A stretch of 64,000 bases of DNA from Thalia democratica (lineage: Eukaryota): the NCBI GenBank assembly GCA_965202585.1, contig OZ241830.1, forward strand, positions 6,696,001 through 6,760,000. Direction: 5' to 3'. Below are positions 3,101 to 63,331 of the stretch, in pieces. The position numbers and the translations under genes are program-made. Below the pieces are notes generated by a model. That model was not told where the DNA came from. It was given only the letters and a program-made list of their open reading frames with translations, and made no database searches. The stretch's first letter is position 1, and each line of letters opens with the position of its first letter.

Positions 3101-6100
3101 ATTTTTACACCAAAAATAATATTTTGCTTTTATTATTTAAAGTTCAGCCATCAAAATAAAAGTCATGCTTTAAAACCAAAAAATTAAAACTCCACAAAAA
3201 TTTATGATAAACTTGAATTTTTAAAATCTTTATAAAAGTCTTTTAGATTCAAACGACTTTATGACTTTAAATTTCAAATTTTAAAACCATTGTGAATTTT
3301 ATGAAAGTAAAGACTTTTATTCTAAGTATTTTAGGTTTAAAAAATCTTAAAATTACAAAAGTTATTATGACGTCATAGTACCTGCATCAGCTTCAAAACT
3401 TGGGCCTTTCCCCTGCTAACATCTTGTATAAGATTTTTGCGTTCCTCATCCAAAGTTTTTTCTACCTGTTTTATTTCTTCACGCATTCTTTTCTTCACTT
3501 CTTCTGTTTCCTTGTTGGATTTTTCGATTTCTTGTTGCATCTTCAATTTGATTTCTTCCTTTTCTTTATTGGCAGCTTCGATGTTTGTTTGGAGTTCTGA
3601 GTTCTCCGATTCCATCTTTGAGATCTTAGCTTCAAGTTCTTTTCTCTGTGTAAATATGTGTAGTTTTTATGATTTATTCTTCTAAGTTGTCTAAAATTAT
3701 TTTTATGTTGCTTGGCACTTTATAAAAGAAGCAGAGTAATTTATAATGTGAAAAAATAAAGACTATCTTTACTTATGTTTTGAGTTTATTTTATAGTTTT
3801 TGATAAAAAGTTTTACACCTTAAATTTTATATAATTATATATTAAGACAATTATGAACCAGTTTATTATTTTCTTCTTGATTTTTTGCCATTTCTTTTTT
3901 CATTTCAGCAACAACAGATCTTATTTCAACAACCTAATTTTTTTTAATAATTTACTAATAATTTATTTTCTTAGAATATATTTTTTAAATATTTTATAAA
4001 AAACAATACTTTATTTGGTCTTGTAGTCTTTTAACTATTTTTTTAATTTTACAGATAAATGATTTAATATATACAAAGATTAATTATTTAGTATCTTATT
4101 TAAAGAAATCAAATACTACAAACCAAACTTTTTTAAACTTATTATACATAAAATTTCCAAGTTGATAAAAGAGACTTTGTAGTATTAACAATAATAATAC
4201 TAACAAAAATAAAATAATTTTTTTAATTTTCCTTAGTTTACTAGAACATAGTTTGCAAACTTTGCTATATACTTTATACAAATAAAGATATCAAAATAAG
4301 TACTAGGCTTATTCAAAGACGTTAAATATATATCATTTATGTATATCAAAAATATATATCGTTTGTATAAATATCAAGTTGCGATTTTAACCTGAATTGT
4401 ACTGTTTAAACAAATACATTATAAACAAGGTTAACATAATTTTAAATTAATACATTTAATTTCAATTACTTCGTTATCTTTTTCCAGTATAGTTTTATGA
4501 TTTTGCTGCTTAGTCTCTGCAATTGCCATTGTTTTTTCCTCGGTTACTTTTAAAACTTGCTCTTTTAAATTTTCTATTTCTTTTTGCATTTCTGACTTTT
4601 GCTGGGCTGATTCAGTCTAAAAGTGATTTGATTGTTTTTTAATTAGTTCTGTACTAATTTCAATTACATATTTCTTTAGAATAAAAATATTCAAGTTTTT
4701 TAAACTAATTATTACTAAATACTCTATTTTAAAATTTGTGACTATTTTTATTTTATTACTATAGGAAACAAAAACATCAGACAAAAACTTTAAAAATTTC
4801 ATAAATTAAGCATTAAAAACAAAAGATGTTATTTACTAATTTAATGGACAGAAAAAATTTACCTCTATCTGTTCTTTTTCCTTTTTAATACTTTCAAGTT
4901 CTTCAGGTAATTTAGGATCACTATTTTTCAAATTTTCTTCCAATTTTAGTTTCACTTCTTTTTCACTGGTCTTCAGCAAATGAATCTACAAAATTTGTAG
5001 GTCATAAGCTACTTTATTAAACAAGCCACTTAAATAAAAAATCAAGTAGAAGCTTAGGGAACTTTTTTATTTAAAAAAATATTTTTTCTAACATAACTTG
5101 TTTCTGTACTATAATACTTCCGAATAAAAAAACTTAATAAAATAATCTGTTGTTGAAAGTAGCATAAATGTTTAGTTTAAAAGTTTTTGTTTAGAAAAGA
5201 CCAAACATTTTTTTTTTGTTGATACGAAAAGTATAAATAAAAACCTTAGCAATTTTTACTTGTAGTAACAGTAGTTAAACGTTAGATTTATTATTTACTT
5301 TTTATTATTTTAATGTGCACACTTGTAAAACTTGACTATTTTGTCTTATTTTTCTAATGTAATTAATTACTTGTGTTTGTAGCACATCTATGTATTGGTC
5401 TTTTTCTTCGATTGTGGCTGTCATTTCTTCTTCTAAGTGCATTTTTGATTGTTTCTCCAAATCTATCGTCTGTAAAACATTTAAATTAAATATATTAAAT
5501 TAACAGTAGAGTATACGAAAACCATTTAAGCTTAAGATTTAAATTTATACGAACACTTATAGCTTGAGTAAAACTGTAAAACAAATTAAATTTTTTAATA
5601 AATAAAAATATGTTATATATTTAACTATCAAAGTTTTCTATTTATGTCCTCTACATAAAAACAAGCTTATATTCTCAATTTTATTAATTTATATCACCGC
5701 ATTTATTGGCTTGTAATTTCGTTAAACCTGGTTTTCCAAATTTTTTTTAGAAGGCCCACTTTAACGAAATTTCCTAAAAAATACCATTAAATGCGCCTAA
5801 GACCTTTTTTTTGCTAGTCATTATCAACTTCAGACTATCTAGCGTGAGATTTAAATCATAGCCTTGTACCCTTTACACCTTCTAGCCCCCTAAACTTCTA
5901 AAATTTTCCTACCATATCTAGCTTAAATTCAAAACTTCCCTTTAAATATAATTTTTTTTTGTTGTCTATTTCAACTCCAAAATATCTAGTGTAACATTAA
6001 AATTCCTCATGCCCCCTACAGACCCTTTACTACTCACGGTCCTATTCACACATAGTTTTAACAGAAAAAACTAGTCTTACTACTGGTATACCTTCAGAAA

Positions 6101-17034: not shown

Positions 17035-17697
17035 TCACATCGGCAGTCTGGGCTGACTGAACAGTCGCAACCTAGGAGGGCCCTGGACCATTATCATGGG
17101 CCTCATTTGCATATTTGGGGCCAGGTGCGTCCTGGCAGGCAGGTTCAGCATCTGGGGCCTGAAAATGAAGGGGGACTGCTGAGGCATCCTGATTATCTGA
17201 GGTTGCCTGGTAACCATCCTGATGTTCGGAGCTTTCAGGACCTGAGGTGGTTGTCTGGTGGTTGTCAAGATGTGGGGCCTGGTTGTCAGTATTTGTGGTC
17301 TTGTGGACAGCAACTGCGTCCTGGTGGTTAGCAACTGGGTGGCGTTGGTGACCACTTGGGCCGGTTGGGAGCTGATTATCGTGGGTTGGGATGAAGCAAC
17401 AAACTGCTGTGTTGTCACGACAACCCTTTTCTTTTTTGGCGGAGGTTCGGGTTTCTTGCTGCTGCCGCACACAGGCTGTGAGGTCAGTCCGGGCACGTAA
17501 GTGTTGTCCAAAACCTGCCCTTTCTCAAAAGCCCGCGTGGTCTTGTTGACCATCTCCTGGGCCTGCTCTTCCACCCACTGCTGGTAGTACAACCTGACGT
17601 TGTCACGGTGCCTCCTTCCCCCGCAGTGCGTCTTCCTGACGGAGGGCGAGTCGTGAGTGAGGTAGGTGTCGCAGTAGTCGCAGAAATATTTTGGCAT
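17035..17697 (-). CDS. SNRPC: U1 small nuclear ribonucleoprotein C (U1-C), single coding exon, 220 aa
   Basis: N-terminal matrin-type zinc finger [41 protein letters not shown] is nearly identical to the canonical U1-C start. C-terminus is Pro/Met/Gln-rich; codons are GC-rich. Confidence 0.97.
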
Positions 17698-24900: not shown

Positions 24901-26518
24901 ACCAATAATTGTCTAACATAGTTTTTTATCAGTACAAAGTATAACTTTTGCAGTCAAGAGTTCAAAAATGGCGAGTACTTAGGTATTAACATAGTTTAAT
25001 TATAAATTTAATGTTATGTTAAAATTCTTTTACATTCAATTAAGTATAACATAATTAGTAATACTTTACACCCACATTTAGATCTTTTTTACTTATTTCG
25101 CAGCTTAGTTTTTACAAATTAAATGCTAACTTCTATTAGTTTTCAAAACTATTTTTAATAAAAGCAAGCTGAACACATAGACTCGCATATAAATTAAAGT
25201 GTTCGTCTGCTGCATTTCGTTCAAACCTATTTTAAACTTAACTTTTAAAATAAGAAAAAGTTTAGATCATCAATTTTTCTTAATGTAACCCAAATTGTAG
25301 ACATGCCCTAGATGTATAGCAATATGTGTAAGGTTTAATAAGTAAAAATTTAAATTTATTCAGTTAATCATAGTTAGCTTAAATGCATTTGAGTTTTGCA
25401 CCAATATTATTACATTTTTGCTTTTCAGAGAAAATAAAAGTTTAGCTTTCCTGTAAGTAACTATTATATTTTTTAAACTTTATTTCATATTCATTTGTAG
25501 ATAGATTATAAAATTTATTTTAATCAATACCATAATAAGTTTTCTGAAGTTCCAAATCAAGTTTATAGAGCTTGCCATTTATTCACTGATGCAACTATAA
25601 AATACAATAGATAAAGATGTTCATAATTTAAAGCTTATTGAAATTGATACCAAAATTTAGCGATCACAACAGCCTTGTACTTAAGTGTCTTAGACAAAAG
25701 CTCAATATTTTATTACTCTAGTTATAATTTTATCATTCTTAAAATAATATAGAAGTACTATTAGTAATACTTGTGCTTACATAAACATTTATACTTAAAC
25801 TGTTAATTTTAAGCATAATAAATGGTGAAGTAGTTTTGTAAGGCAAGGCTCCTACAGTTAAATTTCTTAGTTTGAAATTTTATTTATCAGAAAACTATGT
25901 TAATATTTTTTGCTATTGTTGACTCATGCTGTTGAAATCAATCTTAGGTCTTTTTAGTTAACTTATCAACGTCGATATAACACTGAACCCTACTAAATAT
26001 AGAAATACTTATTTTATACGTTTTTAAGCTGACTGGAACTATAGTTAGTTTATACTTTGGTATAAGTTATGTTGTCATAAATAATACCTGATACTGTAAG
26101 TAATAAAACAGAAATTTATTAAAGAATAAACAAGATTAGAAATAAAGGAAAAAATAAAATAAATTAAAATATACTAGAAAATCGTAGAGAAACAACAAAA
26201 GAAAACAACAAGGAACAAAATATAAACATTGAGTGCACACCATTAGGTAGTAATTAAATTTTAGATTATGGGCATTTCAACCTAATAAACTTTTTAATAA
26301 TTTGTTTAAATTCTATGTACTAATTGGCTTCTATTGATCAAATATAATTAGTCTGAACACTTTTCACATGAAAACTGTTTTAAAGAACAAGATTCACGTC
26401 AGAAATTAGAATAAATAGTTTTGTAATATTTTATATAGGATACATAAGATAAGATATTCCAAATAAAGTTGTGCACAGCTGGTTGAAGCATCTAAAAAAC
26501 TTCATAGCATTTTATAAA

Positions 26519-29500
26519 TTAGTTCCTTCTTTTCCTCCTGCCCTCTCTGCGCTTCCTCCGGAGGCTCCTGTTGTTTTCAAGGCGCTGCCTCCACCTCTCC
26601 TCAGTTTCTCTCGGCTTCCTCCTCTTCCACGTCTGCCTCTTGTTCCTGCTGTTCCTCCACTTCTGCCACCTCGCGAACGACCATCCCTTCCTTATCTCCC
26701 GCAAACCTCTCCTCTTGGCCCTCCTTCTGTTCCTCCTCTCAACTCTCGCGTTCCGCTCTTCCGCCGTCTCGTTCTGCCTCGTCACCTTCAACGCGGCTCT
26801 TCTCTCGCTCCTCAGCTTTCGCTGCTTCACCCGCCACTGCTTCTTCTGCTGGTGGAGGCTCGGGTCCGAGGTGTCCAGCCCGCTGCTTTCGTCCGCGCTG
26901 TCCGAGCAGATGTCCACGTCCAATTCGGACTCAAGTTCGGATTCTGAGTCGTCTCCGGAGCTTTCCGAAAGTTCTTCTTCTGTACCGTCGTCATCTTCTT
27001 GCGAGGTGGCAACTGCGTCCCTCCTCAACTTTCTTCTGGTTATACGCGACCGTCCCCTCGCCGCAACTCTCAGCCTGCAGTGGTTTTCACTTTCGTTTTT
27101 CCTCCTGCCTCGCCACCTCCTTCTTCTGATAGCTATCCGGTGTCTCCTTCTCCACTGAACTATGTCCTCCCCTTTTCTCTTAAGCCTCAACTGTCTTCTC
27201 CTGTTCCGTCTCAAAGTTCTTTTATCAATCCTGGCCGTTCTTGCTTCTGCAGTTTCGTTTGCTCTGGCAAGTTTCAGTTCTGCTCTTCTCTGGCTTCTTA
27301 TTTCTCTTTTCTTCTTTCTATACTCTATAATATCTGCGTGCAAAGACGTGTCTGTGATGTCCAAACCACTGCTTTCATCATTACTGTTGGAGCAGATGTC
27401 AACATCGAAATCTGTTTCCAAATCGGTTCCACTGTAATCACTGTCTCCGCTTGAAGAACTTGACTCTTCAGTGATTTCGTCATCTCTCGCTATACCTCTT
27501 CTTCGTCTTCTGATTATTCTTCTGTTTCTGCGGCTCCTTCTCTTTCTTCGAAGACGACGCTTCCACTTTTTATCTGTCTCATTTCTCCTTCTACGCCTCC
27601 ATCTACGACGCCTCAATCTTCTTTTGTTTCTTCTTCTCCATTCTAATAATGAGCAACCTTTTCGTTTTAGTCTCAAGCTTCTTCTCTTTGTTCTTCTACG
27701 AGTCCTCCAAGCAATTCTGACTTTTCTTTCTTCTTCAGCTTCGTTTTTACGAGCAACTCCCAGTTTGATTCTTCGCTCGCTTCTTAGTTTTCTTTGTTTT
27801 GTTCTCCAGTCAATGATCTCTTTGTGAAGACTTGTATCTGTTATATCAAGTCCGCTGCTTTCATCGTTACTGTCAGAACAAATATCTACATCAAGATCTG
27901 TTTCCAATTCTGACTCGCTATCATAACAACTGTCTGAATCAGATTCGTCATCATTGAGACCTTCTCTGAAATTTCTCAACCTTGTTCTTCTGTTTCTGCG
28001 TTTGGTTCTTCTCTGCTTAATTCTCAACTTCCAGTGAGTTTCAGTTTCATTTTTCCTTATCAACCTCCATTTCCTTCTTCTCAGTATCTTGTTTTTGTTT
28101 CTTCTCCATTGAACAATCGTCTGTCCTTTCCTGGAAAGTCGCAGAGTTCTCCTCTTAGTCCTTCTAAGAGTTCTTTTATCAACTCTAACTGTTCTGACGT
28201 CAGCAGCTTCGTTTGTCCTGTCAACTTTCAACTTGGCTCTTCTTTCGCTCCTGGTTTTTCTCCTCAAGGTTCGCCAATCTTTGATTTCTTGATTGAGATT
28301 CGGATCATTGACGTCCAAACCACTGCTTTCGTCATTACTGTTGGAACAGATGTCAACATCAAAATCTGTTTCCAAATCGGTTCCACTGTAATCACTTTCT
28401 CCGCTTGAGCTTGAATAGTCAGTGATTTCGTCATCTTTAGCTAAACCTCTTCGTCTCCTTCTAATCAATCTTCTGTTTCTTCGACTTCTTCTCTTTCTTC
28501 GAAGACGACGTCTCCATTTTCTATCGGTCTCATTTCTCCTTTTTCGTCTCCATCTGCGACGCCTCAGTCTTATTCTATTTCTTCTTCTCCATTCTAACAA
28601 TGAGCAACCTTTTCGTTTTAGTCTCAAACTTCTTCTCTTTGTTCTTCTACGAGTCCTCCAGTCAATCCTGACTTTTCTTTCATCTTCAGCTTCGTTTTTA
28701 CGAACAATGCGTAGCTTAAATCTCCGCTCGCTTCTTAGTTTTCTTTGTTTTGTTCTCCAGTCTATGATTTCTTTATGAAGACTTGTGTCAGTTATGTCAA
28801 GTCCGCTGCTTTCATCGTTACTGTCAGAACAAATATCTACATCAAGATCTGTTTCCAGTTCAGACTCGCTATCATAACAACTGTCTGAATCAGATTCGTC
28901 ATCATTGAGACCTTCTCTAAAATTCCTCAACCTTGTTCTTTTGTTTCTGCGTTTGGTTCTTCTCTGCTCGATTCTCAACTTCCAGTGAGTTTCAGTTTCA
29001 TTTTTCCTTATCAACCTCCATTTTCGTCTTCTCAGTATCTTGTTTTTGTTTCTTCTCCATTGAACAATCGTCTGTCCTTTCCTAGAAAGTCGAAGTGTTC
29101 TTCTCTTAGTCCTTCTGAGAGTTCTTTTATCAACTCTAACTGTTCTGACGTCAGCAGCTTCGTTTGTCCTGTCAACTTTCAACTTGGCTCTTCTTTCGCT
29201 CCTAGTTTTTCTCCTCTGGGTTCGCCAATCTTTAATTTCTTGATTGAGATTCGGATCATTGATGTCCAAACCACTGCTTTCATCATTACTGTTGGAACAG
29301 ATGTCAACATCAAAGTCTGTTTCCAAATCGGATCCACTGTAGTCACTTTCTCCACTTGAGCTTGAACAGTCTGTGATTTCGTCATCTTTAGCCAAACCTG
29401 TCTTTCTCCTTTTAATCAATCTTCTGTTTCTGCGGTTTCTCCTTCTTACACGAAGACGACGCTTCCACTTTTTATTAGTTTCGTTTTTCCTTTTTCGTCT

Positions 29501-32500
29501 CCATCTACGACGCCTCAGTCTTCTACTATGTCTTCTCTTCCATTCTACTATTGAGCAACCTTTTCGTTTTAGTCTCAAGCTTCTTCTCTTAGTTCGTCTA
29601 CGAGTCCTCCAGGCTATTCTTACTTTTCTTTCATTTTCAGCTTCGTTTCTACGAACAATTCGTAGTTTAAATCTTCGCTCGCTTCTTAGTTTTCTTTGTT
29701 TTGTTCTCCAGTCAATGATCTCTTTATGAAGACTTGTATCAGTTATGTCAAGTCCACTGCTTTCATCATTACTGTCAGAACAAATATCTACATCAAGGTC
29801 TGTTTCCAGTTCAGACTCGCTATCATAACAGCTGTCTGAATCAGATTCGTCATCATTGAGGCCTTCTCTGAAATTTCTCAATCTTGTTCTTCTGTTTCTG
29901 CGTTTGGTTCTTCTCTGTTTAATTCTCAACTTCCAGTGAGTTTCAGTTTCATTTTTCCTTATCAACCTCCATTTTCGTCTTCTCAGTATCTTGTTTTTGA
30001 TTCTTCTCCATTGAACAATCGTCTGTCCTTTCCTAGAAAGTCGCAGAGTTCTCCTCTTAGTCCTTCTGAGAGTTCTTTTATCAACTCTAACTTTTCTGAC
30101 GTCAGCAGTTTCGTTTGTCCTGTCAACTTTCAACTTGGCTCTTCTTTCGCTCCTAGTTTTTCTCCTCTGGGTTCGCCAATCTTTGATTTCTTGATTGAGA
30201 TTCGGATCATTGATGTCCAAACCACTGCTTTCGTCATTACTATTGGAACAGATGTCAACATCAAAGTCTGTTTCCAAATCGGATCCACTGTAATCACTTT
30301 CTCCACTTGAGCTTGAACAGTCTGTGATTTCGTCATCTTTAGCCAAACCTGTCTTTCTCCTTTTAATTAATCTTCTGTTTCTGCGGTTTCTCCTTCTTAC
30401 ACGAAGACGACGCTTCCACTTTTTATTTGTTTCGTTTTTCCTTCTGAGTCTCCATTCACGTCGTTTTATTCTTCTACTATGTCTTCTCTTCCATTCTACT
30501 ATTGAGCAACCTTTTCGTTTTAGTCTCAAACTTCTTCTCTTAGTTCTTCTACGAGTCCTCCAGGTTATTCTTACTTTTCTTTCCTCTTCTATTTCGTTTC
30601 TACGAACAAATGTTAGTTTGAGTCTCCGCTCGCTTCTTAGTTTTCTTTGTTTTGTTCTCCAATCAATGATCTCTTTGTGAAGACTTGTATCAGTTATGTC
30701 AAGACCACTGCTTTCATCGTTACTGTTAGAACAAATATCTACATCAAGGTCTGTTTCTAATTCCGATTCTGTATCACAGTAAGAATCAGAGCCTGATTCG
30801 TCACTAAACTCTGCTCTAGCTTTCTTTTTCTTACGCCTTAGTCTCTTGTTCCTCCTCATGACCTGCTTTCTGTCTATTCTCTTCTTCCACTGTTCTTCAG
30901 TTTCGTTCTTACCTCTCTTTCGCCATGTCCTTCTAACTAACCTCTTATTTATACGTGTTCTCCATCTGGTAATACACTCACTTTTCCTTGAAACACGCAA
31001 CTGCTTTCGTTTAACTCGTCTGCGGTTTCTCCTGGTAATCCTAACACTTCTCTCACTTTCAGTTTCGTTTGTTCTCGTAGATTTAAGCTTCAACCTTCGC
31101 TCGCTTCTCATCTTCCTCTGCTTCACTCTCCACTCTCTAATTTCTTCATTCAAATTCTCATCTGAGATATCTAGTCCGCTGCTTTCGTCTGCGCTATCAG
31201 AGCAAATATCGACGTCCAAATCTGTTTCCAATTCAGATTCTGAGTAGTCGCTGTCTTCACTCGAGCTTGTTACATGTTCTGCGGTGAAATCTCCGATCTT
31301 TACGGTTTCTTTACTTACTGTCTTCTGTTGCCCTCTCGTGCTTGGTCCACACTTGCTCCTGCGATCCTTCCTCCTGTTGCTCAGCCTAAATCTCAACTCC
31401 ATATTCGTTTCATCATCCACCTTCACCTTCCAAGTTCTTCTCTTGGCCTGCCTCTCCCTTCTCGCCCAACAGAGCTTCGCTTCTTCCTCCTTCCTCTCTT
31501 CTCTCAGCTGCTTTCTCTTGTCTCTCCTCCTAGTTCGCCTGATCTTTCTCAGCTTCTCCTCTTCCTTGCTCTCGTTTTTGCGCGTAACAGCTAAGACTTT
31601 TCTCCTTTTAGAGCGAGTATTTCGTTTCTGAGTGCGGAACTCCTTCTCTGCACTGGTCAAGTTTTCATCATTAATATCCAAACCTTCGCTTTCGTCTTTA
31701 CTCTCCGAACAAATGTCCACGTCCAAGTCTGTTTCCAACTCCGACTCGCTGTTGTCGCTGTAGCTGCCGTCGGTTACCAAACCAGACATTCTCTTCACCT
31801 TCCTACGCCTCAACCTCTTGGTCCTGCGTTTGGTTCTCTTCTTCAAAAGTCTCAGCTTCCAACGCTTCTCAGTCTCGTTGGACCTCCTCAACTTCCAAGT
31901 TCGCCTTTTAACTCTCCTTTCCTTCCTAACTCTCCACTGCTCTATGGTTTCTGATTTTCTATTCTCCCTCAAAACTGTTCTCTTGCTCCTTCTAAGAGTT
32001 CTTCTTTGTATCCTCACATTTCGCTGTTCTTCTGTTTCAGTCTTCCTGACCGATATCAGCAGCTTTCTCCTCTCGGAACGACGCTTTCGCTCTTTGATTC
32101 TCCAATTTTTGACTTCCTCATCCAGACTCGCGTCTTCAATGTCGAGTCCCTCACTTTCGTCTGCGCTGTCGGAGCAGATATCCACGTCGAGATCAGTTTC
32201 AAGCTCGGACTCGCTGTGGTGAGAATCGCCGCTTGAGGAGCTCGACACGTCAGCAATGTCGTGTTCGTCGCCGAACAAATTGAACATAGCAACTCCGCGA
32301 CGATTGCTCATCCTCTTGTACCTCTGCTTGATCCTGTTCTTCTCTAGCCTGAGCTTCCAGTGGTTCTCGCTTTCATCCTCTCTCTGCAGCTTCCACTGCC
32401 GCCTTCTCAGCCTTCTCTTGTTCCTGACTCTCCACTGCACTATGGTCTGTCTGGTTCTCTGCACTCTCAAAACTCTTCTCTTTTGTCGTCTCAATGTTCT

Positions 32501-34330
32501 CCTCTTCACTCTCTCAGTTCTCTGTTCTGCAGTCTCACTTTTTCTGACGATCTTCAGCTTGGATCTTCGCTCGCTCCTCAACTTTCTCTGCTTGACTCTC
32601 CACTGCTTTATTTCGGCGTGCAAGCTTTCGTCGTCAACGTCCAAACCTTCGCTTTCATCCGCGCTGTCCGAGCAAATGTCCACGTCCAAATCGGTCTCCA
32701 GCTCGCATTCGCTGTGGTCGGAGTCCCCGCTGGAGCTCGACTCTGAGGTGATCTCGATGTCCTCGTCAAACTTCACTCCCGCAATCACCCCCTTCCTCCG
32801 CAGCCTCTTGTTCCGCTGGCTGATCCTCTTTATAGAGCATCTGAACTCCCACGCTCCCGAGTCCTCGTCGGTTCGGATCTCCTTCCAGTCGTGTCTCTTG
32901 TTCCTTCTTTCCAGCCTCGTCGTCCACTGCTCGATCGTGTCTCCCGCCTTCTGTCTCCTCAGCCGCACCTTCCTTCTCATCTCCCTCCTCGCGTTCCTTC
33001 TCTCGATCCTGATCTTGCGCTCTTCCTTCGTCTCATCCTCCCTCTCCTCTTTCAGCTTCAGCCTCCTTTCGCTCCTTTTGACCTTCTGCTGGTTTCTCCA
33101 CTCCCTTTTCTTCTCGTGCAAAGTTTTGTCTGACACGTCCAAACCCTCGCTCTCCTCTTGGCTGTTGGAGCAAATGTCCAGGTCGAGATCAGTTTCCAGC
33201 TCCGACTCCGTCCAGTTAGAATCTCCGGTTCCGCTTGAAGAGCCGTCGGTGTCCACGGATATGACCGTTTTTACGTCGGCTTCATCACCGTCTGTGGCGT
33301 CGCTATCACTTCCAAGTATAGATCTGCTTCTGTGGCTGGCCGTGTTGGAGATGCTGGTCGCTTCCTCGATCTTTTGGAGACGTTTAATTCTGCGTATACG
33401 GCGGATCTTCTTTCTCTTGACAATCCTGGTGTTCCATTGCTCTGTAGTTTCTTCACTTCTCTGCAAGTACCATTTTCTCTTCTCCGTAATTTCACTCGTT
33501 CTGGTTTTGAACTCCTGTACTGTTTCGCTTCTAAGAATTCTTATCTTCCTTCTTTCCGACCTTCTCATCGTTCTGATCTTGATTCTAAGAGATCTCTCTT
33601 CGGCTGTTTCCGTTTGACGCGTTACCGCCAGTTCTCTCCTTCTCTGACTTCTGGTCTTTCTAAGAGTCTTTCTCCATGTTCTCTGCTCTTCAGTTAAAGC
33701 TGCATCCGTGGTGTTTAAACCTTCGCTTTCATCGTTGCTGTTGGAGCAGATGTCATCATCTGTATCAACTTCTGGTTCAGATTCGTCTGAACTACTAGAT
33801 TCGTCTGAAGAAAGATCGTCAAAGATGCTTCGCTTGCTTTCTGTGGTTTCTTCCTCGACTTGGAGACGTTTAATTCTCCTTATGCGACGAATCTTCTTTC
33901 GCTCGGTGACTCTAGTCTTCCACTGCTCTGTGGTTTCCGTACTTCTTTGCAAGTACCACTTGCTTTTTGTCTCTATCTCGCTTGTTCTGGTTCTGAACTC
34001 TTGTATTGTTTCGCTTCTAAAAGTTCTTATCTTCCTTCTTTCAGACCTTCTCATGGTTCTAATCCTGATCCTGATGGATCTCTCTTCAGCTGTTTCGCTT
34101 TGACGCGTTATTGCAAGCTGTCTTCTTCGCTGGCTTCTGGTCTTTCTTACAGTCTTTCTCCACGTTCTCTGCTCTTCAGTGATCGTTTGATCAGTGATAT
34201 CGAGTCCTTCGCTTTCATCGTCGCTATTGGAGCAGATGTCATCGTCTGTATCGACCTCCGGATCTGATTCGTCACTACTTGATTCATCCGAGGAAAGATT
34301 GTCAAATATGCTCTGCTTGTTTTCGGTGGT
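26519..34330 (-). repeat. Coding tandem array of 16 modules (~155-170 aa each), each an acidic Ser/Asp/Glu block plus an Arg/Lys/Trp-rich block
   Basis: The motif D-I-C-S-x-S-x-(D/E)-E-S-(E/S)-G-L occurs 16 times in the 3535-aa ORF translation, each followed by a basic block. A 17th copy spans exons 9-10. Confidence 0.95.
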
Positions 34331-37300
34331 TTTACTGACGGTACTTTCTTGGTTGATGTTAGTTTCAGTTGTTGTTTGTTCAGTTGTCTGTTCAATTGTC
34401 TGTTCTGTTGTAATTTGTTCAGTTGTTGTCTGTTCTGTTGTTTCAGTTGTTGTTTGTTCTGTTGTCTGTTCAGTTGTCTGTTCTGTTGTTTCAGTTGTTT
34501 GTTCAGTTGTGGTTTGTTCTGTTGTTTCAGTAGTTGTCTGTTCTGTTGTTTGTTCTGTTGTCTGTTCTGTTGTTTCAGTTGTTTGTTCAGTTGTATGTTC
34601 TGTTCTTTCAGTTGTTGTCTGTTCTGTGGTTTGTTCAGTTGTTTGTTCTGTTGTTTCAGTAGTTGTTTGTTCTGTTGTCTGTTCAGTTGTGGTTTGTTCA
34701 GTTGTTTCAGTTGTTGTTTGTTCTGTTGTCTGTTCAGTTGTTGTCTGCTCTGTTGTTTCAGTTGTTGTTTGTTCAGATGTCTGTTCTGTGGTCTGTTCTG
34801 TTGTTTCAGTTGTTGTTTGTTCAGTTGTCTGTTCTGTTGTTTCAGTAGTTGTTTGTTCTGTGGTTTGTTCAGTTGTTTGTTCTGTTGTTTCAGTAGTTGT
34901 TTGTTCTGTTGTCTGTTCTGTGATTTGTTCAGTTGTCTGTTCTGTTGTTTCAGTTGTTGTTTGTTCTGTTGTTTCAGTTGTTGTTTGTTCAGTTGTCTGT
35001 TCTGTTGTTTCAGTTGTAGTTTGTTCTGTTGTTTCAGTTGTTGTCTGTTCTGTTGTTTCAGTTGTTGTTTGTTCAGTTGTCTGTTCTGTGGTCTGTTCAG
35101 TTGTGGTTTGTTCTGTTGTTTCAGTTGTTGTTTGTTCTGTTGTTTCAGTTGTTGTCTGCTCTGTTGTTTCAGTTGATGTTTGTTCAGTTGTCTGTTCTGT
35201 TGTTTCAGTAGTTGTTTGTTCTGTTGTCTGTTCTGTTGTGGTTTGTTCAGTTGTTTGTTCTGTGGTTTGTTCAGTTGTTTGTTCTGTTGTTTCAGTTGTT
35301 GTTTGTTCTGTTGTTTCAGTTGTTGTTTGTTCTGTTGTCTGTTCTGTTGTGGTTTGTTCAGTTGTTTCAGTTGTTTGTTCTGTGGTTTGTTCAGTTGTTT
35401 GTTCTGTTGTTTCAGTTGTTGTTTGTTCTGTTGTTTCAGTTGTTGTTTGTTCTGTTGTCTGTTCTGTGGTCTGTTCAGTTGTTGTTTGTTCAGTTGTCTG
35501 CTCTGTTGTTTGTTCAGTTGTCTGTTCTGTTGTTTCAGTTGTGGTTTGTTCAGTTGTTGTTTGTTCAGTTGTTGTTTGTTCTGTTGTCTGTTCTGTGATT
35601 TTTTCAGTTGTCTGTTCTGTTGTTTCAGTAGTTGTTTGTTCTGTTGTCTGTTCAGTTGTCTGTTCTGTTGTTTCAGTTGATGTTTGTTCAGTTGTCTGTT
35701 CTGTTGTTTCAGTTGTGGTTTGTTCAGTTGTTGTTTGTTCAGTTGTTGTTTGTTCAGTTGTTTCAGTTGTTGTTTGTTCTGTGGTCTGTTCTGTTGTTTG
35801 TTCAGTTGTCTGTTCTGTTGTTTCAGTTGTTGTCTGTTCTGTTGTTTCAGTTGTTGTTTGTTCAGTTGTCTCTTCTGTGGTTTGTTCAGTTGTTGTTTGT
35901 TCAGTTGTTTGTCCTGTTGTCTGTTCTGTTGTTTCAGTTGTTGTTTGTTCAGTTGTTTGTTCTGTTGTTTCAGTTGTGGTTTGTTCAGTTGTTGTTTGTT
36001 CAGTTGTTGTTTTTTCAGTTGTCTGTTCTGTTGTTTGTTCAGTTGTCTGTTCTGTTGTTTCAGTTGTTGTTTGTTCAGTTGTCTGTTCTGTTGTTTCAGT
36101 TGTTGTTTGTTCAGTTGTCTCTTCTGTGGTTTGTTCAGTTGTTGTTTGTTCAGTTGTTTGTCCTGTTGTCTGTTCTGTTGTTTCAGTTGTTGTTTGTTCA
36201 GTTGTTTGTTCTGTTGTTTCAGTTGTGGTTTGTTCAGTTGTTGTTTGTTCTGTTGTTTGTTCTGTTGTCTGTTCAGTTGTTGTTTGTTCTGTTGTTTGTT
36301 CTGTTGTTTCAGTTGTGGTTTGTTCAGTTGTCTGTTCAGTTGTTGTTTGTTCTGTTGTTGTTTGTTCTGTTGTCTGTTCAGTTGTTTGTTCTGTTGTTTC
36401 AGTTGTTGTTTGTTCAGTTGTGGTTTGTTCAGTTGTCTGTGATTCAGTTTGTTCAGTAATTGTTTTTGTTTCAAATTGTTTTGATATTTGATTAGAAGCA
36501 TCAGATTGGTGATATGCAGTCTGTTTAGAAACATTTGTGCTAGATTGCTGGAAAGTTTGATCACTGAACGAAACTTGCTTCTGCTGCTGACCCTCAAACC
36601 CGATCGCTTTGAAGTTGTAAACATCGCTCTGCCTGATCAACGCCCCGCACCCGCCAATTCTGTGTCTCATAGTCTTGCTCTTGGAACACTTGTACTTGGA
36701 ATAAGCTCCGCAGCTCAGATTCAACCCGGTGCTCTGCTGGATCTCGTTCCTCCTGATCATCCTCCGCACCAGCTTCTCCTGCCTCCTCAGCATCTTCGAC
36801 ATCGACCTCTCTCTCCTCTGCACCCTCCTCAACCTCCTGCTGTGGAACCTCTCCCTCTTCTCTCCGCACCTCACCTTCCTCTCGTGACGAGTCTCGTTCA
36901 CGTTTCTTTCTGTTCTCGCCACCAGCTTCCTGTCTTCTCTCGCTTGCCTCCTTCCAAGCTTCTCCTGCCTGCTCGTCTGCTTCATTTCAATCCTCAACTT
37001 GTTCCTCGCTTCCCTCTCTGCTCTTCTCTGTGCTTTTAGCGCTTTCCTCTCTGCCTTGTAATCGCTCGTCTTTTTCAACCTTGTTTGCTTTTCTTCCTCA
37101 GTTTCGTTTGCGATCACTTCTTTCATTATGCTGAGCTGTAAAATGATAATACGTTTTGAATAAGGTTTTTAAGTTTTTTACATATTTTATATAAACACAG
37201 TAAATTATTTTTTTCATCCTCTTTTTTCGAAAACAGATTTTTTTTCATGTTAAGTGGTGTTGTTAATTATAAGTTATTAATTCAAAAATTCTCGTATAAA

Positions 37301-40300
37301 ATAAATTTTTTACTCAGCTAATTATTGAGATCCTCATTTACTTTATTGTTTTCTTAATTAGCTCAACATATCAACCTACCTGTTTGAAATAATTCTTTTC
37401 TTCCCTCATTCTCACCACTCTCTCGTATTCTGTCTCGTTTTTCATCACTTCTCTCACTTCCCTCCTCCTCTCTCGTCTTGCACTTCTCCTTGCAATTCTC
37501 ACTCGCCTGTCTTCCGCAGATTCGGTGCTTCTCTGTTGCGTCAGCTCATCTCTTCTCTTTGATCTTTCCTTCTTCTTTGCCATGCGTAAAGTTTTCGTTT
37601 CAACGCTTATTGCCTCCTGGAAAATGTGTTTGCTACGTTTGATTTTCTTAGAAGATATTTTTATCATAACGTGCATTACGTCTCTTTGTATAAGTAGCTT
37701 TCAAGTTTAAAAAGTAATTAGAAATTAAGCGCAGGTATCTAGTTTTGATTAGACTTGAAGTGTTTTGTCAATAAGTTTTGAAACTATATGTTATTCAAAA
37801 AAAAAACTCCAAACAACATTTCTTAATAAACTTAACACACAAACTTGTAGGTAATCATGGTAACTGTTTTGATGTTCATACGAATTATTTTTAGTATTCT
37901 AAAGACAAATAAAACTTATAAAAATACTAATAGGACATATAATCTTGTAAAACAAATACATGTTGTAAAAACAAGCTTATAAATTAATTAATAATTGTGA
38001 TCTAAAATGTCCTAAATCTGTCTAACTGGATTTTTTATACCAGCTTAAAATTTTAATATTTTAGTTCAAAATCTATACTTTAAGTAGCTTTTTAAACATA
38101 AGCTTTGTAAATATATACACTTCAACACCCACTAATTTAAAATACTATGATCATACTTGCTTAGACCTTCAAATAAATTAGAAATATTAGCTGATATTTT
38201 TATGAAGTTTTCTATAAATTTAATTTTTTTGCTTAAGACCTAAATTATGATAATAAATAAACTAAAAACTTCTAAAAGAAAATAGTTGTAACAATGTTGT
38301 CAAGTAGCAATCGCAATTAGTTTAATGATGTTTGTTAAAATTGAAAAATAAAAACTTAACTTTTAGAAATAACTTTCTCATTTAAATATTCTATATACAA
38401 GATGTGACATACTTTAAAGCGAAATTGAAGTTCCATGTTTAATTAAAGTTCAAAAGTTTGTACTATTTTAGTAAATGTTTGTTTATTTAACAGGTTCCTG
38501 ATTTAAACATGGCTTGAGATGTTAAACTCACACAGCAAATTTTTCAAAATATAATGAAACATAATACTGTGTTACTCTATTCCCACCATAGTATGTTTCA
38601 TTTTTTCAAACTGAATGAATTTATATCTATATTGTTGTATCAGTATGAAAGGAATTTTTTTTCTCCTAGCTTTATAAATAAAAAAAACGTGATGAAGTTT
38701 GGCTCTTTGATCAGCTAGGTTTATCAATGTTTTTAATAATAAGTTTGTAATTATTTAAAATTTTGTATACTATATTTTTTTAATGACAGCTCAAAAAGTT
38801 CGGTCGAACGACCTAGTATACAAAAAACCCTTCAGTTAGCGATCATACAGCTAATTTCAAATCTGTACTATGTTTGTTTATACAAATTTTTACTTAGATA
38901 TAAGTTATCTATGTTTAGTTTTTGTTGATAAATTAACTAACAGTTCTAAAGGTAATTTTTTAGTAGATGTTTTCTTGATAAACATAGTTTAATCTAAAAT
39001 AATGAACTCTAAAATACGATGCCGTGTAAAAAACTTTAAAATAAAAAATGAATTCAAAGATTTTTGTCCTAGACCTAAAAGTGTAAGTTGTAAAACTTAT
39101 TTCACGGCGTTTTAAAACTTTAAATTTTGCTAGAGTTTTTTTAAATAGTTAATACCATTTCGTTTATTAATGCAGCATTGTATATGTTAAGAAAAAGCTT
39201 TATGTAATCAAAACAAGTATTAGTTTAAAAACAAAACTAATTATGAAGTCATAGCATTAACTCATCAACCACAAGTTCTGTCTGTTTTGGTTTTTTATTA
39301 ACAACTAATTTGCCTTGTTTATCATAAGTTACTTAATTAAGTATAAGTTAATTTAATAAAGTTACTTTATAAGTATTTTTTCTTACAACGAGTTTTACAA
39401 CATTTGATAACTTTAAAATATTTAGCATTTAATACCAACTTAAATTCTAGGTTTATGTCATATGAATAGTTTTAACAAAAACAACTTAATATTAATTTTG
39501 AGGACATACTCAAAAGTTATAAAATAACTAATATCACATACTACAAAATTTGAAATTAATTATTATTTTAATAATTAAAATCAATTATACTTTCAAAAAC
39601 AACCTATGTGCGTTACCTAAGTCACTTTGCTTAAGAAACAAAAAATAGGTTTTCCTGAACTAATGCTAATTTAAAAACTTTATAAAACACTTTAAAATTT
39701 TCATAACTTTTATTAGAAAATGTTGAGCTAATTTTTATCTACTAAAGACTAAACTTAAGTTTTATACACTTCTATGACAGAATATTTATACAGTTATTTA
39801 AAGTACTTATGAATTTTTTTATTTTCTCAAATCTTAAAATTAGATTAAGATGTTATTTACTCATAACTAAATCTGATTTTTACTTCTTAGGATTAAATTG
39901 TTTTTGAATTTCAAAAAATACCAATTTAACACGAATTCATAGCCAAATTTATTCTTACATGGCAAAAAAAAGTATAGTTTTATTGCAAAATGTAACTTGA
40001 GTTTCAAAGCAGAATATTTAGAAATAAAGCAAGCTTATGTTCAGCTGTCTTTAAACTTAATACTTATCAAAAAAAAAATAATAAATATTATTAACAATTC
40101 ACCTCATCAACATTACACCCTTCGCTCTCGTCCTCACTGTTACTGCAAACATCATCGTCAGTTTCACTGTAACAATCAGACTCTCCGCTAGACGATGACG
40201 AAGAGAAGTCAGTGCTTGAAGTTGACGATGAGGAAGAGGTTGAAGATGATGACGAAGACTGAGATGAGGATTGAGAGCAGTGAAACGACGAAGATGAAGA

Positions 40301-43300
40301 AGATCTCCTCAGTCTTCGGGTGAAACTGTTTAAGTTTTATATTACGACAAGATAATAAACTAGTCTTTCATTAGATCCTAAAACAAACTACATATGACCG
40401 AGAGACTGATAAGTTTTAGAAATTTTAGTCTTGCCTCGCTACTTAGAAATTGTAAAAACTTTTTACAAGAACATTTCTACTTCCTCAACTCAGCAAATTA
40501 GCTCCATTTTTTAGATAGTCTTATACTAAAGCATTTTAAAAAAACTACACTTAAAAATCATTACACGAAAATAGCATTTAAGCATTTAAAAGTTTGTTGA
40601 AAAATTATAAAGAAATTTAATTTGTTTGTTACCCATTTATGGAACGACTACTAACCTGCTAGTTTCAGTAACTATAAGGTTTCTGTACTCTGATATTTCC
40701 CGATCCAGGGAAATTTTAATGTAGTTAAGCTTTTGAAATCTTACTAAAAATTCGCTCAAACTCTGCCTGGATTTAGTCAGCTGTAATCTCAACGATTCCA
40801 TTTCCTTGTAATCATATTCGTTTGTTGATTCCAGTCGAAGTTCGAGTTCTGAGATGTGCTTTTCAAGAGCCAGTTTCTGTTAAAAGTAAAAATTACTGTA
40901 AATGGTCTAAAACCATACATTAGTATTAACTCTGTTCTAAAAATTAATAAGCTAAGAAACTATTACATTTCAACAAGTTGCTTTCATTATAGTTTTGTAT
41001 TTAACTAACATCATTTCCAACGTGTCAAATAAGTGCAGCTATATCGTAAAAACAGTTGTTTATGTTAAAGTATTTTTACAAACCTTTTCTCTGAGTGGGC
41101 TCAGTTCAATTTCGATTTTGTCCAATTCGTCTTGTTTTTCTGAATTTTTCCCTTGCATCACTTCTAACTTCAATTGCAACGTTTCCAAGTGCTTCGTCAG
41201 GAAACTTACCTTCAGATTTAAATTGGAAATTTAATACAGTAGTAATTATGTGTGATATTTGAAAACGAATTAATTCATCTATAAACAATTGATAAGAAGT
41301 ACTTAAATAAGCATAATAGTTTCTCTAACTTAAAAATGCTAATTCCTAAAAAGCTAAAAATAGATCGTATTAAATTTAGTAGAACTTCCAGTTTGTTTTA
41401 TACTATTATTAGATAAATTTTAGTGCTATATAATAACATATTTTGTATGAAGTTTATCCTACGTGATTTATTAAAATCTTTTATATCTAAAAAGGGATTT
41501 CAAACCTTTTTCTTGTAGTATTTGTCAAGTTCGTTGAGATATTTAGCATTAAAAGTTTCGTATTCCCTTCTTATATTAGCAATTGATTCTTGTAAGTAAG
41601 GAGCCATAGAAGGTCTGACACCTTCCCAGATCGATGCACATTCACAAGTTAGTTCTTCTCTCAGGGTTTCGATTTCCTTTGATAAGTTAACAAGAAATAA
41701 TAACTGCTGTAATCATTTAAGTATGTATTTGCGCTATTAAAATTATTTTTACTTTTAATTAGTTACTTGCTATAGTAACAAAAAAGTTCAAACATTCTCA
41801 AAGTGGCATTTATCAAAAATAAAAGTTTTACAGCTATTTCTGCAAAACAATGTTAGTAAACAGTAATATTTTAATACTCTTGCATAAAATTTTTAGTTCT
41901 TTTTTAATTTAACTATTAGTAGATAATTTATTTTCTTGCTTTTAAAATTTTTAAAAATAGGTTGCTTTTAAAAAACCGTTTTAAAGTGCTTTTTCTGAGA
42001 AAGTTTTTCAAGTTAAAGGTATAATTTTAAATATTACCTGAAAAATAGAAACTTTTAGTTCACAGTATACAAAAATTATGTCTTTTTAATTTTTATAAAA
42101 ACTAACAGTTCTGTGAATTTCTTTTTCTTTTCCGATTTGAATTTCTAAATTTGCAATTCTTGTTTTAAATTCGTCTGCATCAATAACTGCTGCATCACTA
42201 TCCTAAAAATTTTTGAAACCATTTAACACTAATATAGTTTAAAATGTTATGCGTTTTACTTCTTAGTAAACAAATAAAGAGATTTCAACTAATAGAATAA
42301 AAATATAATATTTATTCTTTCAAGACTTTATTATACAATTAAGTTTCGGTCAAAGACCTTGTCAGTGCTGAGAAAAAATCTAAAAAGATATTTAACAGCA
42401 ATGAAGAATTGTATTTAAACAATTAGATAAAAATAAATTTTTACTTTAAACAAATTAAAATTAATCTTAAGAATAAATTTATGGTAAAGTTTAAATTTTA
42501 GTTTCGAATTTTTTTCAGGACTTTTATATGCAAACTAAGTTTCTTGTCTCGAAACTTTACCATAAATTTATCCTTAAGATTAAAATAAAAGTTGTTTTGT
42601 TTTTTTGCAAAGATTAATTTTTATTCAGTTGTTTAAACACTATTTTCCATTGTCACATATCGTTTTATATTTTTATATAAGCACTGACGGTGTCTTTGAT
42701 CGAAAATAAGTTTGCATAACAAATTTTTAAAAGAATAATATAGTTTTAGTTGTATCAAAATTGTGAATAAAAAGTTGATAGATATAAAATCAAAAATGTC
42801 AAACTGTTTTTATTACAGTTTAAGGTTACAAAGACTAAAAAAGTTATTTAACTTGAATAGAAATATTTTTTATTATTTTTAGGCTAAACATTAAGTAGTA
42901 AACTAAACCTTTGTAAGTCTATCTATTTCTCGTTTGTAAACTAGAGTCCTGTTCTTCAAAGTTCCAATTCTGAAATTATTTTCATTAAAAAAGTGTAATT
43001 TAAAAGTACTAGTCATAAGAAAGCAATACATATATATATATAAATAATAACACTGAGTAAAACTTAAGAGTTATTTCCAAACACTACAACAAACTAATAT
43101 TTTAACAAAAAGTACTTTTGAAGAATTTCTTTGACTTTGTAATCTTTATTATCTCTATCGATTTGAACTTCACTATTCAGAACTTCGAGTTCAGTTAGTT
43201 TGTTGCGCAGATTCTAAAAATAGATAAAAAGTTATACTTTTTATTTTAAGTTTGTGCTTATGGCTATCTAAAAAGATCTACAGTTTTACTTTTTGTACCT

Positions 43301-44581
43301 TGTAAGCACACATTTGTAGTTGAGTTGAAAAAATCGAAAACTTTAATCAAGTTTAGATTTTTTGTACTTTTTAGCTTTGAATTCATTTCCAAAATTTAAA
43401 CTTTTTACACAAACTCAAATTTAAATCGTGTTTGTAAATATATTTTACTAGTTTCAAATTTTTTATTCTCTAGTTTCAAACTTAACTTAACATGTTAATT
43501 TATAAGCTTTCAAAGACTTACTTTTAAGTTTTTCAGTAAATTAATTATATACATATTTCATATGTTGTTAAACTTGGAGTTTAAATGGTTTTATAAAAAC
43601 TCACTTTCAAATCATCCTTATAAATTGAGTAAAAATCTAGTTCCAAAGGTCCTTTGCTGCACTGTTTATAAAGTTTCTTGTTTTCGGCCGTCAACTTTTT
43701 TATCATCAGTTTAAGTTCGTGAACTTTGTCAATGTAAGTTGCTAGTGAGCAGTTTAAAGTTTGTAATTGTTCCCTACCTCCTACCTCTATAGTCCTAAAA
43801 GTTTTGATTAAACTAAACAACCAGTTAAATTTCTCAAATACTTTTAACATTTTTCATCATCAATGTAGTGATAAAATAATATTATTGTAAGATGTCAAAC
43901 TTACATTTAATTATAAATAGTATAAACTTATAATTTCTATTCAGTTAAAACATTTATTTGTAATAAAATAAGTAAAATATTTTAAAGTTAGAGTTTATAA
44001 GTCTAAAGTTTTAAGTTGTATCTTCTAACCAGTATCTATTTCGGCCATCATCAATAAAGTTGAGATGTTCGCGCCATCAATAATAAATAATTAATTTCAA
44101 CCAAACAACCAACAACAGCATCCGAATTTATGGAATTAGTCCTAATAAGGACGAAACCGGTCGTAGGTTGCCTCGGATGCTGTTGTTGTTGATCGTGTGG
44201 TGAAGTTAATTATTTATTATTAAGTTGATTCTTTCTAAGTCTTTATTTCGTATAGGGTTCCATAAACACAAAGTTTTGTATATAAGTTAAATAATAGTAA
44301 ACTGCTACTTGATTGCCTAAAAAACTTTATGTAGATACTGAATAGATTAAAAACAGTTATGACGTAACATACCCGCCAATAGTGGCGTCAAATTCCTCGA
44401 CGGAGTAAGTCCTGTAACTGGACGTTCTCGCTTGGAGTTGTGTTGTGGTTGCCATGGTAACTTCCTCCTGGTTGCTATGGAGTATGTCCCTGTTGCTAGG
44501 GAGCACCTCCCCACCTCCGACCCAGTAGCAGGTCGCCTCCGAGTCGGAGGAGTAGCTGTCTGAGCTGGAAGAAGATGACAT
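26519..44581 (-). CDS. Giant cytoplasmic intermediate filament protein (~4,082 aa): head, IF rod, ~3,700-aa repetitive polyampholyte tail
   Basis: 11 GT-AG exons with consistent phases: 44581-44373 (209 nt), 43794-43605 (190), 43213-43116 (98), 42969-42909 (61), 42202-42107 (96), 41676-41506 (171), 41209-41084 (126), 40876-40656 (221), 40325-40103 (223), 37616-37380 (237), 37135-26519 (10,617); total 12,249 nt. IF hallmarks: EQLQTLNCSLATYIDKV (coil 1A), LQESIANIRREYE (coil 2 start), IKISLDREISEYRNLI (rod end). Exon 9 already encodes the tail repeat motif (ETDDDVCSNSEDESEG). Confidence 0.85.
34362..36440 (-). repeat. Coding low-complexity repeat (TTEQ/TTTEQ/TTTET)n, ~690 codons
   Basis: Mixed 12- and 15-nt units (e.g. 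ACAACTGAACAA, ACAACAGAACAG), visible directly; open in frame within the giant exon. Confidence 0.97.
44076..44229 (+). ncRNA. Decayed minimal (Penelope/retrozyme-type) hammerhead ribozyme motif inside a ~50-bp-arm hairpin
   Basis: Stem II GTCC-TAATAA-GGAC (44139-44152), then GAAAC-CG-GTC (44153-44162). Stem I candidate TTTAT/GTAGG, with exactly 7 nt between stems I and II but reading GGAATTA instead of CTGANGA. Outer arms 44076-44125 and 44173-44229 are inverted repeats. Confidence 0.55.

Positions 44582-57555: not shown

Positions 57556-63331
<5,776 letters not shown>

Follow-up and report, generated by a model that had tools for sequence, protein, structure and literature searches.

The tails of intermediate filament (IF) proteins govern filament spacing, bundling and the binding of partners. 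Vertebrate IF tails are, to our knowledge, at most ~1,300-1,400 amino acids (aa) long. Ciona IF-Fb has been described as an IF-annexin fusion (Karabinos, Zimek and Weber 2004, Gene 326:123, as cited in PMC5603733). Here we describe a gene in a 64,000-nucleotide window of the Thalia democratica genome (contig OZ241830.1, positions 6,696,001 to 6,760,000; the window is the whole stretch analysed, and positions are counted within it). A first-pass annotation had proposed that a giant open reading frame (ORF) in this window is the last exon of an IF gene, and we put at about 80% the probability that this 10.6-kb ORF is the last exon of one 11-exon minus-strand gene for a 4,082-aa IF protein. Its 3,692-residue, block-charged tail would stretch the known range of IF tails nearly threefold, and we know of no IF protein of comparable size, so that it would be the largest of its family. 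Such a tail would be a natural test case for polyampholyte side-arms, charge-patterned condensation and filament cross-linking, roles for which vertebrates use separate proteins such as filaggrin, trichohyalin and plakins.

Exon structure and reading frame of the gene

The window is very AT-rich, with ~23% G+C outside genes, and a rise to 37-50% G+C at 26-38 kb coincides with the 3,535-aa ORF, which runs from ATG to stop at 26519..37126 on the minus strand. Ten exons were placed upstream of it from open frames and splice signals on the same strand. The resulting model comprises 11 exons from 44581 to 26519, in which every intron is GT..AG and the sole stop is terminal; the product of 4,082 aa has a predicted mass of ~488 kDa. 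Exon 9 (40325-40103) ends with ...SSSSGESDCYSETDDDVCSNSEDESEGCNVDE and is followed by gtgaat, exon 10 is preceded by ttttccag at 37616 and ends CAG/gtaggt at 37380, and exon 11 begins after ttttacag at 37135. In the spliced model the predicted junction peptide is CNVDEEAISVETK, and the exon 10/11 joint reads NYFKQ-LSIMK. If intron 9 were retained, the frame would continue ...DE-VNC-stop, with the stop three codons past the exon 9 donor. The sequence details of the first-pass annotation that were checked hold, and its junction texts proved correct to the base; its 4,082-aa product is obtained from 11 GT..AG exons that close in frame with a single terminal stop, and its in-frame entry from CAG/gtaggt (37380) to ttttacag/CTC (37135) closes as well.

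Five independent lines, namely module continuity, the tails of paralogues, a paralogue mRNA, an RNA-derived fragment (P0011) and coding constraint, bear out the assignment of the giant ORF to the IF gene. With D[IV]C[SN]xS as anchor, 17 modules can be counted in the tail, and introns 9 and 10 divide the first of them; exon 9 does end, as had been noticed, in the motif that is repeated through the giant ORF. A module hidden Markov model (HMM) was built solely from the 16 internal, intronless modules of the giant exon. It matched model residues 425-578 as one domain through both junctions (82.1 bits, E 1.6e-27), with no gap at 465/466, which upholds the "exact register" claimed across the exon 9/10 junction. 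Exon 9 alone scored 10.6 bits, exon 10 alone 39.8 bits and the two joined 77.7 bits, and 100 shuffled versions of each never scored above 4.2 bits.

A relative offers a view of the same junction in RNA. P0011 is a 108-aa fragment from run ERR1712096 in the MERC catalogue, which was assembled from Tara Oceans eukaryotic metatranscriptomes (bioRxiv 10.1101/386110). It reads SFHCSQ...DDDVCSNSDDESEGCNENE-EGISFETKTLRITKRKERSERR..., with the junction text ...ESEGCNENE-EGISFETKTLR..., and over the exon 9/10 junction it shares 66.7% identity with this gene, without a junction gap, and 48-54% with paralogue sequences. In unspliced RNA or genomic DNA, the frame would end three codons after the junction. 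Judged by this alignment, P0011 is an orthologue of exon 9 that reads directly into exon 10 in the RNA of a relative. Furthermore, ten other MERC fragments match modules at 43-83% identity (three were checked, all from run ERR1712096), which indicates that the module array is transcribed in that relative. Scans of metagenome contigs with the tail-start alignment and with P0011 gave no match, and no contig encoding P0011 was found.

DNA from a related organism (run X3) served to measure coding constraint. Over 3.6 kb of the giant exon, 36 substitutions were listed, distributed 6/6/24 over the codon positions (binomial p = 4e-5); 23 are synonymous and none creates a stop. The only indel there, +9 nt at 33287 in module 3, keeps the frame, and the introns carry many 1-nt indels. 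Over 173 nt of exon 10 there are 3 differences, compared with 18, plus 5 gap positions, over 183 nt of a record that is mostly flanking intron. All five listed variants of exon 9 are synonymous, and its sole indel keeps the frame: the second haplotype of the sequenced sample is without 3 nt of the poly-Ser tract at 40227. Purifying selection on the giant exon in the proposed frame is supported by these patterns. Plus-strand ORFs within the giant exon (e.g. 32256-33617 and 34194-36491) were rejected as genes because the substitutions follow the minus-strand codon phase.

The small exons at 40.1-44.6 kb had been taken to encode an IF rod, and ordered Pfam Filament matches in three of them agree with this. 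Filament (PF00038) was scanned exon by exon, so that each exon stays below the 40-bit cut-off for whole proteins; the matches are collinear, in exon 2 (profile 3-54, 30.9 bits), exon 6 (161-197, 16.6 bits) and exon 8 (242-309, 27.5 bits). The spliced model is also collinear with P0012, an 820-aa protein on an environmental contig that itself matches Filament with 161.7 bits over profile 2-313; identity is 38.8% over 804 aa (model residues 41-828), and the head motif ARTSSYRTYSV aligns with SRPSSYRKSYGV of P0012. Exon 2 carries the coil 1A signature (LNDRLASYIDKV-like) as LQTLNCSLATYIDKV, which is aligned to LQELNDRFANYIDKV of vimentin, its best solved match being vimentin coil 1A. Among solved structures, exon 8 is matched best by coil 2B fragments of keratin 5/1, lamin A and vimentin, and ISLDREISEYRNLIVTETSR aligns with keratin LALDVEIATYRKLL, but with KLLEGE replaced by NLIVTE (KLITGE in the paralogues).

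The architecture of the rod and its introns is that of a chordate cytoplasmic IF. The stretch from the residue matched to profile position 54 to that matched to position 161 spans about 109 residues (107 profile positions), too few to accommodate the 42-residue lamin-type insert; by this spacing, coil 1B is of the short chordate type, a chordate-specific form of cytoplasmic IF. Rod exons 4-8 measure 61, 96, 171, 126 and 221 nt, and the same blocks appear when a paralogue mRNA is mapped to the genome. In vertebrate type III genes the corresponding pattern is 61/96/162/126/221 nt, and 61/96/126/221 rod introns are a mark of type I-III genes, unlike type IV/VI.

Tail modules, paralogues and the origin of the array

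The tail of 3,692 residues (442 kDa, pI 10) consists of charge blocks of both signs. Serine makes up 47% of exon 9, and the whole basic segment at aa 466-680 (exon 10 and the first 136 residues of exon 11) has a net charge of +37. The Thr/Glu/Gln array has a 12-nt period with 166.5 copies (Tandem Repeats Finder). Each module combines an acidic Ser/Asp/Glu block of ~48 aa (net -9 to -21), with the invariant D-x-D-I-C-S-x-S-x-x-E-S-x-G-L, and an Arg- and Trp-rich block of ~110 aa (net +20 to +49). Mean column identity in the 16-module alignment is 52%, the last eight modules form a two-module repeat of ~951 nt with 80-92% protein identity, and the array holds 128 S/T-x-x-D/E sites. AlphaFold2, supplied with the 16 modules as an alignment, predicted a disordered acidic part followed by four helices (pLDDT 75, pTM 0.40), and arginines are one-sided on predicted helices 1 and 2 (helical moments 0.72 and 0.63, p <= 0.001 against shuffles). 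A genome search found the module at no other locus of the 801-Mb T. democratica genome. The tail was scanned with Pfam at exons 9 and 10, the exon 11 start and two module stretches, and no family was returned; ESM Atlas gave no usable match for a two-module piece, and Foldseek with the module model gave nothing in the PDB and nothing better than E = 0.5 among AlphaFold clusters. The first-pass annotation knew of no other IF with a ~3,700-aa tail of alternating charge blocks; this distinction does not apply to the first ~400 residues, a family-wide tail common to the paralogues, but it stands for the Thr/Glu/Gln expansion and the 16 extra modules, which are peculiar to this gene.

At least five related IF loci exist in the T. 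democratica genome. In paralogues P1 (C5:32.68 Mb) and P2 (C5:59.58 Mb), exons 9, 10 and 11 are homologous to those of this gene, with tail introns at identical sites and in identical phases: exon 9 is poly-Ser and ends DDDICSxSxDEGxSCxENE/gt, exon 10 is basic with RKTE[TS]AEQ, and the last exon opens L[RK]..KE....E[TS]E.EK. The three tails align over ~400 residues, through the Cys motif into the Thr-rich repeat. The last exons of P1 and P2 encode only 313-327 aa and contain no further modules, the proteins amount to ~820-950 aa, and P1 has ~5 TTETTTNQ units where this gene has 695 residues. The P0012 frame runs uninterrupted over 820 aa on a 2,654-nt contig (L042) from a JGI sample, and this contig is therefore read as metatranscriptomic. 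It maps on the P2 locus as 11 exon blocks at 74-94% identity, with the three tail exons included, so that P0012 is apparently the spliced mRNA of the P2 orthologue in a related organism. P0015, another metatranscriptome orthologue of the paralogues, shares this tail plan. The head exon of P1 (L036:1424-1801, minus strand) has a Thr/Glu-rich stretch of its own (TTTTVETTTTTTTTTTV...), which suggests that Thr-rich low-complexity sequence recurs in the family outside the tail. Upstream of P1, at L036:8781-9998 on the plus strand (G000:C5:32694780-32695997), a 406-aa ORF resembles a non-LTR reverse transcriptase by eye.

A further paralogue is an IF-annexin gene at G000:C4:52534000-52543999 (L038), in which a Ser-rich segment is followed by a basic tail and then by annexin repeats (Pfam Annexin, 47.5 bits at L038:8414-8740). 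P0016, a 508-aa sequence on a JGI contig, compared with L038:6544-6984, looks like an mRNA of the orthologue of this gene that ends a few codons into the intron behind the basic exon (...LYAEIVKKGKLQ-stop). It would be a short isoform without annexin, and read-through termination would then be in use in this gene family.

Comparison of these tails indicates that an ordinary acidic/basic tail of the family has grown into a repeat array in this one gene, with the Thr-rich repeat enlarged from ~40 to 695 residues. Modules 2-17 contain no introns and run parallel to the spliced product, from the 3' part of exon 9 through exon 10 to the 5' part of exon 11, and the introns inside module 1 are common to the paralogues. 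Because the modules are intronless and collinear with spliced exons, the array may have started from a fragment of mRNA, of this gene or of an ancestor, that was reverse-transcribed and inserted into the last exon; the simplest origin may be such a processed copy followed by tandem amplification. In a tree, the intron-bearing first modules (this gene, both paralogues and P0012) split from modules 2-17 with 100/100 support. Modules 2-17 are not placed beside this gene's own module 1, and their derivation from this gene's mRNA after the paralogue split was dropped for that reason. For evolution, the locus would illustrate how a family-wide tail of one acidic/basic unit and a short Thr repeat can be inflated inside a single exon.

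Features of the Thalia democratica IF locus and its 3' flank (window coordinates)
Feature	Position	Strand	Description
Exon 1	44373..44581	-	Start codon and head domain, aa 1-70; head motif ARTSSYRTYSV
Exon 2	43605..43794	-	Coil 1A (LQTLNCSLATYIDKV) and linker L1
Exon 3	43116..43213	-	Coil 1B; GT..AG and frame; matching 99-nt block in paralogue mRNA mapping
Exon 4	42909..42969	-	61 nt, coil 1B; ~61-nt block also in paralogue mRNA mapping
Exon 5	42107..42202	-	96 nt, end of coil 1B; frame and paralogue mRNA mapping
Exon 6	41506..41676	-	171 nt, linker L12 and start of coil 2; Pfam Filament
Exon 7	41084..41209	-	126 nt, coil 2; frame and paralogue mRNA mapping
Exon 8	40656..40876	-	221 nt, end of coil 2B (ISLDREISEYRNLIVTETSR); Pfam Filament
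Exon 9	40103..40325	-	Acidic half of module 1: acidic poly-Ser segment of the tail that ends in DDDVCSNSEDESEGCNVDE
Exon 10	37380..37616	-	Basic half of module 1, EAISVETKTLR...RSTESAEDRRVRIARR...
Exon 11	26519..37135	-	10,617 nt including stop TAA at 26519-26521
Lys/Arg/Glu-rich basic region	36728..37135	-	Repeated NET-x-EE-R motifs; aa 545-680; collinear with P1 and P2 last exons
Cys motif CGAY...RIGGCG and Gln/Ser-rich stretch	36443..36727	-	aa 681-775; motif common to P1, P2 and P0012
Thr/Glu/Gln short-repeat array (TTEQ, TTTET etc.)	34358..36442	-	695 aa, net charge -165
Sixteen intronless modules	26522..34330	-	155-192 aa each; 2,612 aa, net +316
Candidate polyadenylation signal AATAAA	26115..26120	-	~400 nt past the stop; pattern match only

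A second hexamer, ATTAAA, lies at 26293-26298, and such hexamers are frequent in the AT-rich DNA here. A hammerhead relic was considered for the hairpin in intron 1 (44076-44229) and rejected, as nothing reached the Rfam gathering score and the only match was a partial HH9 (16 bits, E = 0.37, 44135-44169). Elsewhere in the window, a single-exon 220-aa ORF at 17035-17697 (minus strand), in a G+C-rich island, combines a U1 zinc finger (Pfam zf-U1, 73 bits) with a long Pro/Gln/Thr-rich tail and looks like a U1 snRNP C homologue. Exon-sized ORFs at 59090-61756 (plus strand) resemble an NAD-dependent isocitrate dehydrogenase subunit by eye, and several Glu/Lys-rich coiled-coil exon ORFs of a neighbouring gene lie at 491-3615 (minus strand).

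Possible roles of the tail and rival readings

What might such a tail do? We tentatively propose, at somewhat less than even odds, a cross-linking side-arm mechanism. The rod would form 10-nm filaments, probably with a partner of the same family, and the 3,692-residue tail would project from the filament as a side-arm. The Thr/Glu/Gln stretch would serve as an extended, solvated, negatively charged spacer, and the modules as multivalent stickers whose one-sided arginine ladders on two predicted helices would bind polyanionic surfaces. Their partners would be the acidic, probably phosphorylated, blocks and the Thr/Glu/Gln spacers of neighbouring tails; the tails of adjacent filaments would zip together under phosphorylation control into a gel-like cross-linked matrix. 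Alternative partners would be RNA or other cellular polyanions. The broader picture is more doubtful still: the largest IF-family protein as a filament subunit that brings its own matrix, allowing a charge-driven gel or RNA capture without a linker, with an array seeded from mRNA.

Several points weigh against the 11-exon model or against what we make of its product. P0011 comes from a protein-level short-read assembly, which may misjoin similar sequences. Searches for sequencing runs returned DNA only (X1 and X2 from the same sample, and X3) and no T. democratica RNA, and the contigs of these DNA runs on the window span introns and show no splice joints. Since no RNA run of the species was found, we infer the 12.2-kb coding sequence as a whole, the exon 10/11 junction, the inclusion of the entire 10.6 kb in a single transcript and the proportions of the isoforms. 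A short isoform may coexist with the long form, or dominate; it is plausible because of the stop just inside intron 9 and the read-through form P0016. The end of coil 2B is divergent (YRNLIVTE versus the usual YRKLLEGE), which bears on assembly competence, the repeat copy numbers hinge on the assembly, and for a module that matches no fold or family the proposed mechanism draws on composition and predicted helices only.

In one rival reading, the IF gene ends in intron 9 (...CNVDE-VNC-stop), and the giant ORF, alone or together with exon 10, forms a second gene under its own promoter that starts, for example, at one of the ATG codons present at 37676 and 37126. The early stop, these start codons, the lack of a species RNA run among those found and the P0016 isoform of the paralogue's orthologue all speak for such a pair of transcription units. 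We regard it as very unlikely, as it would cut module 1 between two genes, yet module 1 aligns as one domain, P0011 joins both halves in the RNA of a relative, a paralogue mRNA links the rod to a homologous tail, and the last exons of the paralogues, homologues of the start of exon 11, have no independent start. It is less improbable, though still unlikely, that the gene is single but yields mainly a short isoform that stops after exon 9 or 10, the giant tail being rare or tissue-restricted. This would fit the in-frame stop after the exon 9 donor, the read-through termination in the family and the frequent alternative polyadenylation of very long last exons; against it stand the purifying selection on the giant exon and the ten module fragments expressed in one plankton metatranscriptome run. 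We find it scarcely credible that the giant exon has no protein function, as a repeat in decay or in neutral expansion, or that its size is an assembly artefact. Low-complexity repeats can expand neutrally, and the last eight modules, 80-92% identical in two-module steps, are hard to assemble, but an open frame persists over 3,538 codons of AT-rich DNA, third-position bias and an in-frame sole indel are seen against the related organism, modules are expressed in a relative, and independent short-read contigs cover modules 2-8, which are diverged and unique in sequence.

With the 11-exon gene preferred, the function of its tail is less settled. Instead of cross-linking filaments, the cationic Arg/Trp helices could anchor to them RNA, ribonucleoprotein or other polyanions, for instance tubulin tails or acidic lipids. 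Arginine-rich helices are a known type of RNA-binding element, and the modules combine a net charge of +316 with one-sided arginine ladders and conserved Trp on the predicted helices. This alternative nevertheless seems improbable to us, as Pfam, ESM Atlas and Foldseek recognised no RNA-binding domain and each basic block is paired with a conserved acidic block, a better fit to self-neutralisation or self-association. Processing of the array into ~160-aa units freed from the filament anchor, by analogy with profilaggrin, would suit the sixteen near-regular units and their poly-basic boundaries (RRRRRG, KRRKTG). No protease site or linker was recognised, however, no signal peptide or S100 head is present, and the boundaries are no better conserved than the rest of the module, so that a polyprotein is a most improbable reading. 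Whatever the role of the tail, gene finders are likely to report the proposed gene as two units, one an IF gene and the other an orphan giant ORF.

Comparison with known filament and matrix proteins

The protein is a cytoplasmic IF that probably belongs to the tunicate IF-F group, an assignment made through P0012 from the 8,000 scored candidates that shared most words. The named relatives found for P0012 are Ciona intestinalis IF-Fb entries (Filament plus Annexin), with 40% identity over the rod. Like Ciona IF-Fb, the protein has the head motif, a short coil 1B and a Ser-rich segment directly after the rod. In IF-Fb, however, the tail leads to annexin repeats and lacks the DDDICS motif, the NET/Arg-helix block, the Thr/Glu/Gln array and the module array, and the protein described here is ~5x longer. 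The IF-annexin gene at L038 is the T. democratica counterpart of Ciona IF-Fb. Taken by themselves, these relationships mark the host as a tunicate, and the occurrence of close relatives in plankton metatranscriptomes of the open ocean suggests that it may be pelagic. P1, P2, P0012 and P0015 share the 11-exon plan and the succession of a poly-Ser acidic segment, an intron, a basic segment, an intron, a basic region, the Cys motif and a Thr-rich repeat. Full-length relatives did not appear in length-bounded word searches (giant ORF region 1900-2700; exon 11 start, region 1-250 of a 912-aa query), and two very large protein libraries yielded fragments of this protein only.

Similar designs exist in unrelated proteins. 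Nestin, synemin and neurofilament M/H also combine a rod with a long, repetitive, charged and largely disordered projecting tail that has phosphorylatable repeats. Their tails show no sequence relation to this one and are mostly polyanionic or of KSP type, unlike the net-positive alternation of acidic blocks and Arg helices; the Pfam scan gave no KSP or nestin-type tail homology, and the rod introns are of the 61/96/126/221 type. Filaggrin and trichohyalin resemble the giant exon in being highly charged tandem repeats, encoded in giant exons, that bundle or cross-link keratin filaments, trichohyalin being Arg/Glu-rich and helical. They are, however, separate S100-headed proteins without an IF rod, and no homology was found; the likeness would be functional only. 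No exon scanned matched S100 or EF-hand in Pfam, and the N-terminus here is an IF head and rod. Nopp140 (NOLC1) and treacle likewise alternate acidic serine clusters, which are casein kinase 2 sites, with basic stretches over many repeats, but they are nucleolar, have no IF rod and give no family match, and their basic parts are rich in Lys, Pro and Ala and not made of Arg/Trp helices. Set against all of these, the T. democratica protein is an extreme new variant inside the known IF family and not a new kind of system.

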